Sequence record: PQ898399.1
Reading direction: 5' to 3' (one strand)
DNA: 64,000 nt
The notes under the pieces were generated by a model that saw nothing but the letters and a program-made list of their open reading frames with translations, was not told the origin of the DNA and did not search any database. Within the stretch, counting starts at the first letter, position 1; each line of letters begins with the position of its first letter. Position numbers and translations under genes: made by a program. Below, in pieces: positions 61,453 to 64,000 of this stretch.

Positions 61453-61636
61453 AGAACTGTACACCAAAGCTAAAGCATGGGTTAAGAAAACTTATGATGT
61501 CGATTCTCCGATGAATAAGTTTGACTGGATTCTTATCGGCGTTGCTACTGGCGTTGTTTTAACTGTTATTAAAAGCGTTATAGTTTCTTGTGGTGTACTT
61601 GGTATTTTGATTCATCACGCATACAAACGCGGTTAA
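61439..61636 (+). CDS. Small membrane protein, 65 aa
   Basis: ATG 61439; hydrophobic C-terminal half. Confidence 0.7.
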   Translation: MNQIKELYTKAKAWVKKTYDVDSPMNKFDWILIGVATGVVLTVIKSVIVSCGVLGILIHHAYKRG

Positions 61637-61662
61637 ATGCTTAAAGAGTTACTTGATATTAT
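61635..61662 (+). promoter_or_regulatory. MotA-dependent middle promoter
   Basis: AAATGCTTA 61635-61643, 13 nt, TATTAT 61657-61662. Confidence 0.72.
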
Positions 61663-61679
61663 TAATCTATCGACGGAAC

Positions 61680-61904: not shown

Positions 61905-62238
61905 AGTCTTTAAAAGCATTCAGGGCTTACGTTCAGACGAATATTACAGCTTTTCAAGCGGTATAAATATACCTATAGAACTGGTTACTCCACAATGGAT
62001 TAAGTCTGATTCAATGGGTAATGAAATTGCTCCTGGCGATATTGTAGCTTTCGATAAAGGTGGAAAAACTGCCGGGTGTATGGTTGGTATCCTTTTAGGA
62101 TGGACTGAGCAAGGTTACCGTGTAGCTGGTTTTCAGACTTCAACCAATTTTCCAGAACATCGCACTATTGAAGGTTCACTTCGTTCACCGCACCAAGTTT
62201 TCTTGGTTAAATCGATGAACTCAACAGTTCTTAAATAA
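61879..62238 (+). CDS. Conserved tRNA-region protein (trna.2/trna.3-like)
   Basis: IELVTP..GNEIAPGDIVAF..GILLG..VFLVKS; synteny. Confidence 0.75.
   Translation: MSISKTWHKVFKSIQGLRSDEYYSFSSGINIPIELVTPQWIKSDSMGNEIAPGDIVAFDKGGKTAGCMVGILLGWTEQGYRVAGFQTSTNFPEHRTIEGSLRSPHQVFLVKSMNSTVLK
61962..61969 (+). promoter_or_regulatory. Intragenic late promoter, probably for the tRNA cluster
   Basis: TATAAATA about 275 nt upstream of the first tRNA. Confidence 0.6.
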
Positions 62239-62243
62239 ATTTC

Positions 62244-62331
62244 GGGGAGTTAATTCCGTAGAGGTAGCGGTGCAGACTGTAAATCTGTTGTCATTGCGAC
62301 TCGGGTGGTTCGACTCCATCACTCCCCACCA
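62244..62331 (+). tRNA. tRNA-Tyr(GTA)
   Basis: Acceptor GGGGAGT/ACTCCCC, loop CT-GTA-AA, long variable arm, encoded CCA. Confidence 0.95.
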
Positions 62332-62337
62332 AATTCA

Positions 62338-62413
62338 GGGAATATAGCTCAGTTGGTAGAGCAAACGACCGATAATCGTTAGGTCACTGGTTCGAGTCCA
62401 GTTATTCCCACCA
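62338..62413 (+). tRNA. tRNA-Ile(GAT) with C33
   Basis: Acceptor GGGAATA/TATTCCC, stem AACGA/TCGTT, loop CC-GAT-AA, CCA. Confidence 0.93.
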
Positions 62414-62449
62414 ATTTGCTTAAAGATATTTTTGATATTATAAATATCT
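62414..62449 (+). promoter_or_regulatory. Overlapping middle and late promoters inside the tRNA cluster
   Basis: ATTTGCTTA 62414-62422, TATTAT 62436-62441, TATAAATA 62439-62446; inverted repeat AGATATTT/AAATATCT. Confidence 0.8.
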
Positions 62450-62451
62450 AC

Positions 62452-62528
62452 AGGACACTAGCTCAGCTGGTTAGAGCACCGGACTTTTAATCCGGGTGTC
62501 GAAAGTTCGAATCTTTCGTGTCCTACCA
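62452..62528 (+). tRNA. tRNA-Lys(TTT)
   Basis: AGGACAC/GTGTCCT, CCGGA-CTTTTAA-TCCGG, CCA. Confidence 0.95.
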
Positions 62529-62529
62529 A

Positions 62530-62604
62530 TCTCCGTTCGTCTATCGGTTAGGACGCCGGCCTTTCACGTCGGAAAGAAGAGTTCAATTCTCTTACGGAGA
62601 ACCA
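62530..62604 (+). tRNA. tRNA-Glu(TTC)
   Basis: TCTCCGT/ACGGAGA, loop CT-TTC-AC, CCA. Confidence 0.94.
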
Positions 62605-62609
62605 AATTT

Positions 62610-62694
62610 GGGTCGTTGGCTGAGAGGGTAAGCGGCGGACTGTTAATCCGTGTCAGAAATGACTAGGCAGGTTCGATACCTGCACGACCCGCCA
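62610..62694 (+). tRNA. tRNA-Asn(GTT) with long variable arm
   Basis: GGGTCGT/ACGACCC, loop CT-GTT-AA, extra arm GTCA-GAAA-TGAC, CCA. Confidence 0.93.
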
Positions 62695-62696
62695 AA

Positions 62697-62800
62697 TATA
62701 GAAATCAGAAGACGTTCTGATAAGTCGTCGGCACTTTAATCCCTGTCTGTGAGTTCCCTCAACGATAACTACACAGTCCAAATTAAATACGGCGCCGAAA
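62697..62800 (+). ncRNA. rnaD: Probable homologue of T4 stable RNA D (species II)
   Basis: AGAAA-hairpin-TAAGTCGTCGG 5' part and ACGGCG 3' part match my recollection of T4 rnaD; helices 62704-62721, 62724-28/62789-93, 62747-55/62767-76. Confidence 0.6.
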
Positions 62801-62801
62801 G

Positions 62802-62934
62802 TTTACTTTCGGAGTATATTGATGAAGTTATTGCGTTAATGAAGATTATATCTGTGCACGGGTATATGAGAGCCAATAACGCCTATTCAGCTTTCCGGAA
62901 GGCTTGAGGGTAATCCCATACTCACGAAAGTAAA
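62802..62934 (+). ncRNA. Unassigned structured RNA X1
   Basis: 16-bp closing helix with one bulge plus internal helices; directly 5' of tRNA-Asp. Confidence 0.55.
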
Positions 62935-62937
62935 TTT

Positions 62938-63013
62938 GGACCTATAGTTTCAGCGGTGAAAATACTCGCCTGTCACGCGAGAGTCACGGGTTCGAATCCC
63001 GTTAGGTCCGCCA
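62938..63013 (+). tRNA. tRNA-Asp(GTC)
   Basis: GGACCTA/TAGGTCC, CTCGC-CTGTCAC-GCGAG, CCA. Confidence 0.95.
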
Positions 63014-63025
63014 AATACGAGGCAG

Positions 63026-63160
63026 TTCTTGAAGATGAGTTTGAGTCCTATAAGATAATGCCGAGGACGAAGCTGTTTGTTCCCACGGGATAAGCTCTAT
63101 ATTCGGAAGATTATATCTTTAGCGTGTTCTACATCAAGCTACTTGTTAGTACTTCAAGAA
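63026..63160 (+). ncRNA. Unassigned structured RNA X2
   Basis: TTCTTGAAG/CTTCAAGAA closing helix, AGTTTGA/TCAAGCT, GTCC/GGAC, AGCT/AGCT. Confidence 0.55.
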
Positions 63161-63170
63161 TCCGGATAGA

Positions 63171-63247
63171 TGCGGGTTAACTTCAGTTGGTAGAATGACG
63201 GGTTCATATCCCGTTACGCGATGGTTCGAGTCCATCACCCGCCTCCA
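63171..63247 (+). tRNA. tRNA-Met(CAT), initiator-like
   Basis: T1:C72 mismatch, three G:C pairs in the anticodon stem (ACGGG/CCCGT), loop TT-CAT-AT, CCA. Confidence 0.85.
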
Positions 63248-63253
63248 AATAAT

Positions 63254-63329
63254 TGGGGTATAGCCAAGTTGGTAAGGCAGTAGATTTTGATTCTACGATT
63301 CCCTGGTTCGAGTCCAGGTACCCCAGCCA
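63254..63329 (+). tRNA. tRNA-Gln(TTG)
   Basis: TGGGGTA/TACCCCA, loop TT-TTG-AT, CCA. Confidence 0.95.
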
Positions 63330-63333
63330 AATT

Positions 63334-63430
63334 AGAGTGTAACGGTAAGTCCATTTATCGGAAGTGCGAACCGCGCGATAGCTGCCAATGCATAAATGGT
63401 TACTCCGTACAAGACTGGGACTCTCACTCT
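63334..63430 (+). ncRNA. Unassigned structured RNA X3
   Basis: AGAGTG/CACTCT, GTAA/TTAC, CCATTTAT/ATAAATGG. Confidence 0.5.
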
Positions 63431-63451
63431 TCTTAAATAAGCTGTCACATC

Positions 63452-63540
63452 AATATTTACTTGACGCGTCTACAAGGGTTGAACTGATCACTCTTCTCTC
63501 AATTTCGTGTGAAGGCATCATGATTGCTGGAGTGAATATT
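63452..63540 (+). ncRNA. Possible structured RNA X4
   Basis: AATATTTACTT/GAGTGAATATT closing helix just 5' of tRNA-His. Confidence 0.35.
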
Positions 63541-63543
63541 AAT

Positions 63544-63619
63544 GTGGCCGTAGTTCAGTTGGTAGAACTCGAGATTGTGATTCTCGTAGCCATGGGTTCA
63601 ACTCCCATCGGTCACCCCA
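63544..63619 (+). tRNA. tRNA-His(GTG)
   Basis: GTGGCCG/CGGTCAC, C73, loop TT-GTG-AT, CCA. Confidence 0.94.
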
Positions 63620-63623
63620 ATTC

Positions 63624-63715
63624 GGAAGCGTGGTAGAGCGGCTTATTACACCGGTCTTGAAAACCGGAGGCCGTAGTGATACGGTCCGTGGGTTCGAATC
63701 CCACCGCTTCCTCCA
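63624..63715 (+). tRNA. tRNA-Ser(TGA)
   Basis: GGAAGCG/CGCTTCC, loop CT-TGA-AA, long variable arm, CCA. Confidence 0.95.
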
Positions 63716-63719
63716 TTTT

Positions 63720-63793
63720 AGGTCTCTCGTATAGTGGTATTATCCTGAGCTCCAACCTCAGTGACGTGGGTTCGATTCCTACGGGGCCTGCCA
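63720..63793 (+). tRNA. tRNA-Trp(CCA)
   Basis: AGGTCTC/GGGGCCT, CTGAG-CTCCAAC-CTCAG, CCA. Confidence 0.92.
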
Positions 63794-63797
63794 AATT

Positions 63798-63940
63798 ATC
63801 GGTTCGAGGAATTGCCTAAGCCGTAAGCCGAGTAGCGTTTTTGACGGAACGTTCGGATATGGTAGAGGCATGGCCTTCATAAGATAAATTGTGACGTCAA
63901 TCGCAATTTAACCTGGTTCGAATCCAGGCGTTCCGTACAA
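63798..63940 (+). ncRNA. rnaC: Homologue of T4 stable RNA C (species I)
   Basis: GCCGTAAGCCGAGTAGCGTTTTTGACGGAACGTTCGGATATGG core as I recall from T4 rnaC; tRNA-like 3' end with T-arm CCTGG-TTCGAAT-CCAGG. Confidence 0.8.
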
Positions 63941-63943
63941 ATT

Positions 63944-64000
63944 GCATCCATCGTATAGCGGCTATTATGACTGGCTTCCACCCAGTAGATGAGAGTTCGA
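63944..64000 (+). tRNA. tRNA-Gly(TCC), truncated by window end
   Basis: ACTGG-CTTCCAC-CCAGT anticodon arm; T-loop begins GTTCGA. Confidence 0.88.

Follow-up and report, generated by a model that had tools for sequence, protein, structure and literature searches.

The last part of a 64,000-nucleotide (nt) stretch of sequence record PQ898399.1 (the window) carries the beginning of a phage transfer RNA (tRNA) cluster in which, at positions 62244-64000, the tRNA genes are interrupted by four long gaps. These gaps hold six discrete, conserved, structured, non-coding elements that are homologous across phages and lie flush with the tRNAs: a relative of the T4 RNA gene rnaD, four families that we call X1 to X4, and an ortholog of T4 rnaC (Table 1). 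We think it probable, though well short of certain, that these are six separate small structured non-coding RNA genes that are co-transcribed with the tRNAs and freed by the enzymes that mature tRNAs, a host-directed role in trans being one that fits. Positions 62200-64000 are 100% identical to Enterobacter phages SonariX (the phage of this record) and vB_Ecl_id4496 and, over the same positions, 95.7-98.7% identical to PG7, AS6 and other full-length matches; AS6 belongs to the genus Karamvirus (Straboviridae, Tevenvirinae), and so does the window.

Six modules in four gaps

An earlier note, made from the letters of this DNA, had counted 12 tRNA genes (11 complete with CCA and one cut) and four gaps of 150-245 nt between them. 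ARAGORN and Rfam show these counts and coordinates to be right, and the gaps measure 243 nt (62695-62937), 157 nt (63014-63170), 214 nt (63330-63543) and 150 nt (63794-63943). The six non-tRNA elements that the note had placed in them are borne out as well. In distant blastn matches among 50,697 phage records, gap 1 and gap 3 each split into halves with differing distributions and gap 2 and gap 4 each behave as one unit; further, in nhmmer and profile searches (105 loci), each of the six modules is the only occupant of some gap in another phage. The rnaD-like module stands alone in the 106-nt Asn-Asp gap of Moonvirus KM16, X1 in the 150-nt Lys-Asn gap of EcS1, X2 in 125-127-nt Asn-Met gaps of Winklervirus and EcS1, and X4 in 96-114-nt gaps ahead of tRNA-His in Jiaodavirus, Winklervirus and Tequatrovirus wV7 (the 96-nt gap lying between Gln and His). 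X3 is found immediately 3' of tRNA-Gln in Gelderlandvirus and N4-like phages, and rnaC lies between Trp and Gly or elsewhere, depending on the phage. All modules are on the tRNA strand and 0-6 nt from their neighbors in every phage compared, and in the window each begins 1-4 nt past the CCA of the tRNA ahead of it, or adjoins another element without a gap, and stops at position +1 of the next tRNA or a few nt short of it. Their presence is patchy: X3, for example, is missing from otherwise near-identical Karamvirus clusters (loci L034, L037 and L094).

The folds of these elements were examined on alignments of 10-18 distinct copies of each (from GenBank phages and IMG/VR), with two kinds of control: the 3' partners were slid by 1-3 columns, and the alignments were shuffled 300 times (500 times for X3). 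Standard pairs fill 91% to 98.5% of the cells and compensatory pairs occur in every element (Table 1), with the qualification that the alignment rows are related, the compensatory counts thus including inherited changes, and that the structures were predicted on the same alignments. Pairing falls to 25-50% in the slid controls (for X3, to 34-49% against the 91% observed), and in none of the six elements did any shuffle reach the observed pairing or compensatory counts (0/300; X3, 0/500); the margin over the controls is large and holds for each helix separately. Compensatory change, the lack of which in the spacers the earlier note had named as telling against its own idea, is therefore present in all six above both the slid and the shuffled controls.

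The ends of the elements fall into two classes. Where the note had described long closing helices throughout, these are in fact found in X1 (19 base pairs, bp), X2 (12 bp) and X4 (14-18 bp), all without CCA; X3 (6-7 bp), rnaC (7 bp) and the rnaD-like element (6 bp) have short stems instead and form a class with tRNA-like ends.

No Rfam 15 family matches the gaps at its gathering score, and even at E <= 10 only tRNA models appear, the sole such score being 18.8 bits for tRNA-Sec (gathering score 47) inside rnaC; the Rfam comparison that the note had proposed thus leaves all six elements without a family. In the literature searched we found no description of X1 to X4, with the limit that a viral catalogue of 10,006 motifs (PMC10690425), whose tables were not searched, may contain them, and in the GenBank records inspected they are either unannotated or labeled "hypothetical protein." As far as Rfam and these annotations go, the suggestion of an undescribed repertoire holds for X1 to X4.

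Relatives of T4 RNAs C and D and the four X families

Gap 4 is 81% identical to Tequatrovirus rnaC over 148 of its 150 nt (80.4% to T4 itself), with the 5' two-thirds almost invariant, and by blastn it matches 741 phage records; the Tequatrovirus copies annotated as rnaC are those of Kha5h, Aplg8 and T4 (NC_000866.4), the last of which supplied the bounds of the element in the window. The fold is shared too, so that the last element is indeed rnaC-like, as had been noted: the ends form an acceptor-like stem of 7 bp, inside which lie a long hairpin on the 5' side, a variable hairpin and a T-arm. In the T4 and window types two U-U mismatches interrupt this terminal stem, which pairs perfectly in JD18, with compensatory change between these three types; after it come one base and CCA in JD18 and Potts1, and ACA in T4 and the window. 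Trp and Gly are the neighbors of rnaC in seven architectures, with spacers of 0-6 nt. ARAGORN reports a 95-nt "tRNA-Met" at 63844-63938, which is actually the tRNA-like 3' part of the rnaC homolog and stands as a false call in the SonariX GenBank record. As a separate observation, the clusters of AS6 and SonariX are 97.5% identical overall, yet rnaC of AS6 (locus L002, 4093-4250) is only about 82% identical to that of SonariX (window 63794-63946); this divergence amid near-identical clusters points to replacement of the allele of a single RNA gene.

It is about 50 years since T4 RNAs C and D became known. Their genes, rnaC (139 nt) and rnaD (119 nt), lie directly after tRNA-Arg in T4 (NC_000866.4), and RNAC and RNAD have been seen by northern blot as late RNAs (PMC9697503); papers up to 2025 still give them no function (among them PMC3014915 and PMC9697503). 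In a 2025 study that evolved a T4-like phage on a semi-permissive E. coli strain, every line acquired the same single-nucleotide change in rnaD (PMC12685909), and this convergence hints at a host-dependent role.

The first element of the window has a 5' hairpin followed by a 6-bp stem, set away from the 5' end, that encloses two further stems. In T4 rnaD, too, a 5' hairpin, the same invariant single-stranded motifs and the enclosing stem follow one another in this order; the sequence of the 5' hairpin is wholly replaced with respect to T4, yet its pairing is kept by full compensation, and in the 6-bp stem pairing is 100%, two of the pairs being compensatory. Profiles of the groups connect the Karamvirus type with the T4 type at E 0.003-0.006 along nearly the full length, and via intermediate types the rnaD profile link reaches 2e-5 to 7e-9. 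In T4 and at loci L045, L022 and L042 the 3' end of rnaD consists of the stem and ACC(A). We accept the element as a relative of rnaD at the level of profiles, with the caveat of weak direct sequence similarity; the earlier note's "rnaD-like" is upheld by the profiles and the shared motif order, not by direct similarity.

X3 is the family that crosses phage families. Within the Straboviridae it occurs in the tRNA clusters of Karamvirus and Gelderlandvirus, and outside them in tRNA clusters of an N4-like Schitoviridae phage, of Ackermannviridae (Taipeivirus, and Salmonella, Klebsiella and Serratia phages of ~155-160 kb) and of ENT3-like phages, nearly always directly 3' of a tRNA. A stem P1 (6-7 bp) closes a long arm with P2 (4 bp), P3 (7 bp) and an apical module, and a 3' hairpin (3 bp, 7-nt loop) adjoins the 3' side of P1. 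The copies of ENT3-like and N4-like phages, and several from metagenomes, carry 2-4 bases and then CCA after P1. Across 17 distinct copies (Straboviridae, Schitoviridae, Ackermannviridae and ENT3-like, the set on which the pairs were counted, with three more from metagenomes), pairing in P1 and P2 is 100%, 8 of the 10 pairs being compensatory, and the 33-nt apical module (63358-63390) is invariant but for one position, at which the window differs from the other 16. Stems that have diverged with compensation around an unchanged core argue for constraint and not for recent transfer. We found no true copy of X3 in 185,579 bacterial and archaeal species genomes (one per species) or in 5,426 E. coli genomes; an exact 27-mer of the core has 0 matches in the species genomes, and 21 matches to a 19-mer were discarded as seed-only chance matches in GC-rich genomes. 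Neither a host copy nor an antisense target turned up for X3 or X4, and E. coli gave no match.

The three families with long terminal helices differ in what these enclose. In X1 the helix, which has one bulge, closes two conserved hairpin arms whose tips are short palindromes, and homologs occur in Karamvirus, Marfavirus and Kagamiyamavirus. X2, with matches in 194 phage records, contains a hairpin that covaries, inner segments that are invariant and, as an optional insert that the window has, a further hairpin. The A/U-rich helix of X4 surrounds a variable interior with a small covarying hairpin; pattern-scan matches to X4 were mostly chance and were filtered by nhmmer. Homologs of X4 occur in Karamvirus, Tequatrovirus (wV7), Jiaodavirus, Winklervirus, Gelderlandvirus, Kagamiyamavirus and Moonvirus. 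Readings by eye of the conserved segments of X2 and X3 as hammerhead, k-turn, loop-E or T-loop motifs were rejected: relatives break the motifs and Rfam does not support them.

A side observation concerns the neighborhood of X3 in Klebsiella phage Menlow (Ackermannviridae), where the 192 nt between tRNA-Asn and X3 (locus L015, 2282-2473) fold into another two pieces, with a terminal helix to close each of them and CCA at its end. Unannotated non-tRNA elements are therefore present in the tRNA clusters of other phage families as well.

Release, role and competing explanations

The tRNAs and the six elements would be transcribed as one precursor, with a promoter-like spacer between tRNA-Ile and tRNA-Lys. 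This spacer is 38 nt long in all Karamvirus copies, lies upstream of all six elements and contains a MotA-box-like motif, then 12 bp, then a -10-like hexamer, together with a late-promoter-like octamer (62439-62446) that ends 6 nt short of tRNA-Lys; for this octamer the window has 18 occurrences, with 4.0 expected. A second MotA-box-like and -10-like arrangement lies at ~61636-61668, upstream of the cluster. The consensus motifs used were those of general knowledge and all of these are motif matches, so that the spacer is a candidate internal middle or late promoter; a late-promoter-like motif before tRNA-Lys fits the finding that T4 RNAC and RNAD are late RNAs (PMC9697503). A scan for sigma-70 promoters and terminators gave fewer promoter-like sites than shuffled sequence and none useful on the + strand. 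Of the layered early, middle and late promoters that had been proposed, a middle (MotA-type) and a late one stand by motif in the Ile-Lys spacer, and a MotA-type one upstream; an early one was not verified.

Because the junctions between elements and tRNAs are flush, the enzymes that mature tRNAs would release the elements as by-products: RNase P would free their 3' boundaries, and endonucleolytic cleavage with 3' trimming their 5' boundaries. The elements rnaC, rnaD-like and X3, whose acceptor-like stem is in many relatives followed by 1-4 bases and CCA, would probably be handled like tRNAs, and the 12-19-bp helices of X1, X2 and X4 would protect both of their ends against exonucleases. On the model of T4 RNAs C and D, all would accumulate as stable RNAs of ~100-155 nt. 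That they are released as discrete stable RNAs is something we infer from those two T4 RNAs, from the flush junctions and from the tRNA-like ends.

As accessory, host-directed RNAs acting in trans, the elements would bind a conserved host partner. Such a role fits because invariant apical modules stand amid covarying stems, because presence is patchy and because there has been movement between unrelated phage families; the invariant single-stranded modules point to candidate partner-binding sites. A part as decoy or sponge in a phage-host contest centered on tRNAs is possible; the note's suggestion of decoys for tRNA-targeting nucleases, or of antitoxin or sensor mimics, may hold but draws no support from the evidence here. 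We put forward more tentatively, and regard as rather unlikely in its full form, the idea of an exchangeable repertoire of trans-acting RNAs in the tRNA clusters of virulent enterobacterial phages of at least three families, with at least six RNA families in this window, whose invariant apical modules (the 33-nt core of X3 being the clearest) bind and neutralize a conserved host factor, which could be a tRNA-targeting immune nuclease, an acceptor-end toxin or an RNA-processing enzyme. If true, T4 RNAs C and D would be the first-seen members of a broad class of RNA-based counter-defense.

Several points weigh against six separate RNA genes with a role in trans. Apart from the relatedness of the alignment rows mentioned above, release and stability are argued by analogy alone, for all six elements in this phage and for X1 to X4 in every phage, and the fixed tRNA downstream of X2 and X4 fits a role in cis at least as well as one in trans. 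Direct similarity to T4 rnaD is weak: a profile of the T4 type only ranks the element of the window first, but at E = 1.7. Neither the rnaD-like element nor X3 has an encoded CCA in the window, and the rnaD-like stem runs straight into X1, so that handling in the manner of a tRNA is less clear in the window than in its relatives. Finally, single sequences of gaps 2 and 3 fold no better than shuffles (z -0.5 and +0.6) and the stability of X3 is also uninformative, gaps 1 and 4 being the ones that are more stable than shuffles (z -3.4 and -3.9); the structural evidence is evolutionary, not thermodynamic.

The most serious competitor, doubtful on balance, is that X1, X2 and X4 are parts of the precursor that act in cis, as structured 5' leaders or as processing stalks of the RNase III type, which would divide the precursor, govern the order in which it folds or tune the 5' maturation or yield of the following tRNA. 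Of 22 distinct architectures with X2, 20 have tRNA-Met (CAT) as the next gene, and 18 of 22 with X4 have tRNA-His there, regardless of what stands upstream, and both of these tRNAs are unusual at the RNase P cleavage site. In 7 of 9 distinct copies, across genera, the tRNA-Met after X2 shows a 1:72 mismatch and three G-C pairs beside the anticodon loop, so an initiator-like tRNA may be among the genes of the phage. Bacterial tRNA-His genes normally encode G-1; the phage tRNA-His has C73 with T at -1 in all 11 distinct copies, and without an encoded G-1 its charging or 5' maturation must therefore differ from the host's. The X4 helix can, moreover, extend by 4 bp into the first bases of tRNA-His, and this four-pair extension (with the last bases of tRNA-Gln where that is adjacent) is found in 15 of 17 rows. 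The 12-19-bp terminal helices resemble RNase III stalks, and RNase III and RNase E do act in the processing of the T4 tRNA precursor, species 1 RNA being cut by RNase III in vitro.

On the other side, conservation of the loops and hairpins inside X1 and X2 exceeds what a mere stalk would require, and the 12-bp helix of X2 is short for RNase III. The linkage itself has exceptions: tRNA-His occurs without X4 (loci L049 and L053, and ENT3) and X4 without tRNA-His (SEA1), and in Marfavirus the initiator-like tRNA comes after an X4-like element, not X2. Gene order in these clusters is conserved generally, so the linkage may be historical. In Winklervirus, 6.5-10 kb deletions that take much of the tRNA cluster confer escape from ToxIN abortive infection at a fitness cost (PMC5449768), and Winklervirus phages carry X2 and X4 (the isolate Kc304 also rnaC). 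The region is thus dispensable in that host, and these deletions do not single out the RNAs.

We hold it very unlikely that the inverted repeats act as DNA, whether as promoters, homing-endonuclease targets, recombination joints or mobile DNA of the miniature inverted-repeat transposable element (MITE) kind. The modules are mobile and patchy, the clusters of relatives hold GIY-YIG or HNH homing endonuclease genes, the X1 tips are palindromic and the Ile-Lys spacer has its promoter-like motif; nevertheless, the helices accept G-U pairs, both of their sides change and pairing is kept only by the logic of the transcribed strand, whereas terminal repeats bound by protein would keep their sequence instead. 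The elements also share the strand and register of the tRNAs in every phage, and their T4 homologs are proven RNAs.

Still harder to credit is that the gap elements are decayed tRNA genes or tRNA pseudogenes with no present function. Their location in a tRNA cluster, the T-arm and acceptor-like stem of rnaC (with its ARAGORN miscall) and the acceptor-like stems of the rnaD-like element and X3 would suit this, and recombination within tRNA genes does make defective copies, such as the tRNA-Lys chimera of AS6; but the gaps have no Rfam tRNA match at E <= 10 other than the weak tRNA-Sec score in rnaC, and folds that are not cloverleaves have been kept by compensatory change over genera (for X3, over three families), which largely refutes it.

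Least credible of all is that the gaps encode small proteins: there are open reading frames of 30-82 codons, and coding sequences are annotated in AS6, Potts1, KM16 and others, but the starts are mostly GTG or TTG without a Shine-Dalgarno sequence, one frame runs into tRNA-His, indels that are multiples of three are a minority in five of the six element alignments, the variable columns of all six are spread evenly over three phases with no 3-nt periodicity, and substitutions are paired across helices. The earlier statement that no frame has a convincing Shine-Dalgarno lead stands on these grounds, and the "hypothetical proteins" annotated over the gaps are therefore very likely spurious.

The separate RNA genes that we favor add four families to the T4 kind of small stable RNA, one of them crossing phage families and each with a covariation-supported fold, and four covariance models are missing from Rfam. 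The natural presence/absence variants and the family-crossing X3 turn a T4 anecdote into a testable comparative problem. There is a practical side as well: standard annotation mislabels these gaps (the false tRNA-Met in rnaC, the spurious "hypothetical proteins"), and phage tRNA counts in studies of codon usage and defense evasion are affected.

Cluster layout and known systems

The region is the beginning of the tRNA cluster, downstream of a gene 1 / 57A / 57B / ip7 / tRNA.4 block, a placement like that in T4. All 12 tRNA genes were located with ARAGORN and Rfam; CCA is encoded in 11 of the 11 complete genes at 62244-64000, and the spacers between tRNAs are mostly 1-6 nt, the Ile-Lys spacer being the long one.

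Table 1. Features of the tRNA cluster at the end of the window, with the pairing statistics of the six elements
Feature	Position	Strand	Basis	Cells with standard pairs	Compensatory pairs	Rows
tRNA-Tyr (GTA), long variable arm, encoded CCA	62244..62331	+	Rfam tRNA 39.1 bits; annotated tRNA-Tyr in AS6, CC31			
tRNA-Ile (GAT)	62338..62413	+	ARAGORN/Rfam			
Ile-Lys spacer, 38 nt, promoter-like motifs	62414..62451	+	motif matches			
tRNA-Lys (TTT)	62452..62528	+	ARAGORN/Rfam			
tRNA-Glu (TTC)	62530..62604	+	ARAGORN/Rfam			
tRNA-Asn (GTT), 85 nt, long variable arm	62610..62694	+	ARAGORN/Rfam			
Element A, rnaD-like RNA	62696..62797	+	motif order, group profiles, covariation	97%	7/14	15
Element B, X1 (abuts tRNA-Asp)	62798..62937	+	homologs and covariation	97.5%	16/47	11
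tRNA-Asp (GTC)	62938..63013	+	ARAGORN/Rfam			
Element C, X2 (structured core 63021-63163)	63014..63170	+	homologs and covariation	98.5%	12/33	18
tRNA-Met (CAT), initiator-like	63171..63247	+	ARAGORN; 1:72 mismatch, three G-C pairs			
tRNA-Gln (TTG)	63254..63329	+	ARAGORN/Rfam			
Element D, X3 (structured core 63334-63429)	63330..63442	+	homologs and covariation	91%	17/29	17
Element E, X4	63443..63543	+	homologs and covariation	95%	13/23	17
tRNA-His (GTG), C73, T at -1	63544..63619	+	ARAGORN			
tRNA-Ser (TGA)	63624..63715	+	ARAGORN/Rfam			
tRNA-Trp (CCA)	63720..63793	+	ARAGORN/Rfam			
Element F, rnaC ortholog (T4 species 1 RNA)	63800..63938	+	homology to T4 rnaC	94%	27/44	10
tRNA-Gly (TCC), cut at window end (Pro then Phe next in full record)	63944..64000	+	Rfam			

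Three observations on the cluster and its record stand apart from the elements. The tRNA-Asn (GTT) at 62610-62694 has, at 85 nt, a class-II shape, and the same form is found in Jiaodavirus, Winklervirus and Marfavirus; the tRNA-Asn of T4-type phages is an ordinary one of 75 nt, and to our knowledge the class-II shape in bacteria is normally limited to Ser, Leu and Tyr. The tRNA-Lys of AS6 (locus L002, 2750-2833) is a chimera of a SonariX-type 5' half and a CC31-type 3' half, with mismatches in its anticodon and acceptor stems and no anticodon assigned by ARAGORN, and it marks a recombination joint inside a tRNA gene. The SonariX record PQ898399.1 is 248,734 bp long and labeled a partial genome, against 171-174 kb in close relatives; the deposit probably contains a repeated part.

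Among known systems, GOLLD and ROOL resemble these elements as structured phage or prophage non-coding RNAs that have no known function and often lie beside phage tRNA genes; they differ in being several hundred nt long and represented in Rfam, with no match in the gaps of the window. The E. coli RtT RNA (tyrT operon) and similar spacer RNAs are, as proposed here, released from a tRNA precursor by tRNA processing; RtT has no sequence or Rfam similarity to the phage elements, which are far more structured and are conserved across genera. In the bacterial Y RNA-like YrlA and in tmRNA with its tRNA-like domain, a module resembling an acceptor and T-arm is joined to a body that is not tRNA, and tRNA enzymes act on these RNAs; rnaC has this design and X3 has it in part, but the gaps have no Rfam match to them and no link to Ro/Rsr or SmpB is evident. 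RNase III stalks, as in ribosomal RNA (rRNA) operons and T7 early transcripts, are long flanking helices, and the helices here likewise lie in a polycistronic precursor that bears tRNAs; X1 and X4 (up to 22 bp with its extension) would be of about the size of such stalks, roughly two helical turns, and X2 has 12 bp. The helices of the window enclose a small conserved RNA and not rRNA, and cleavage at them is putative.

The closest likeness is to T4 rnaC and rnaD, which also lie in the tRNA cluster, on the tRNA strand and flush with their neighbors, element F being an ortholog of rnaC and element A, at the level of profiles, a relative of rnaD. That the two are stable late RNAs is shown for T4 only (NC_000866.4; PMC3014915; PMC9697503), and T4 rnaD encodes a 3' CCA that the rnaD-like element of the window does not. 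T4 has only these two RNAs, side by side after tRNA-Arg; in the window they are separated and are joined by four families that are not homologous to C or D.

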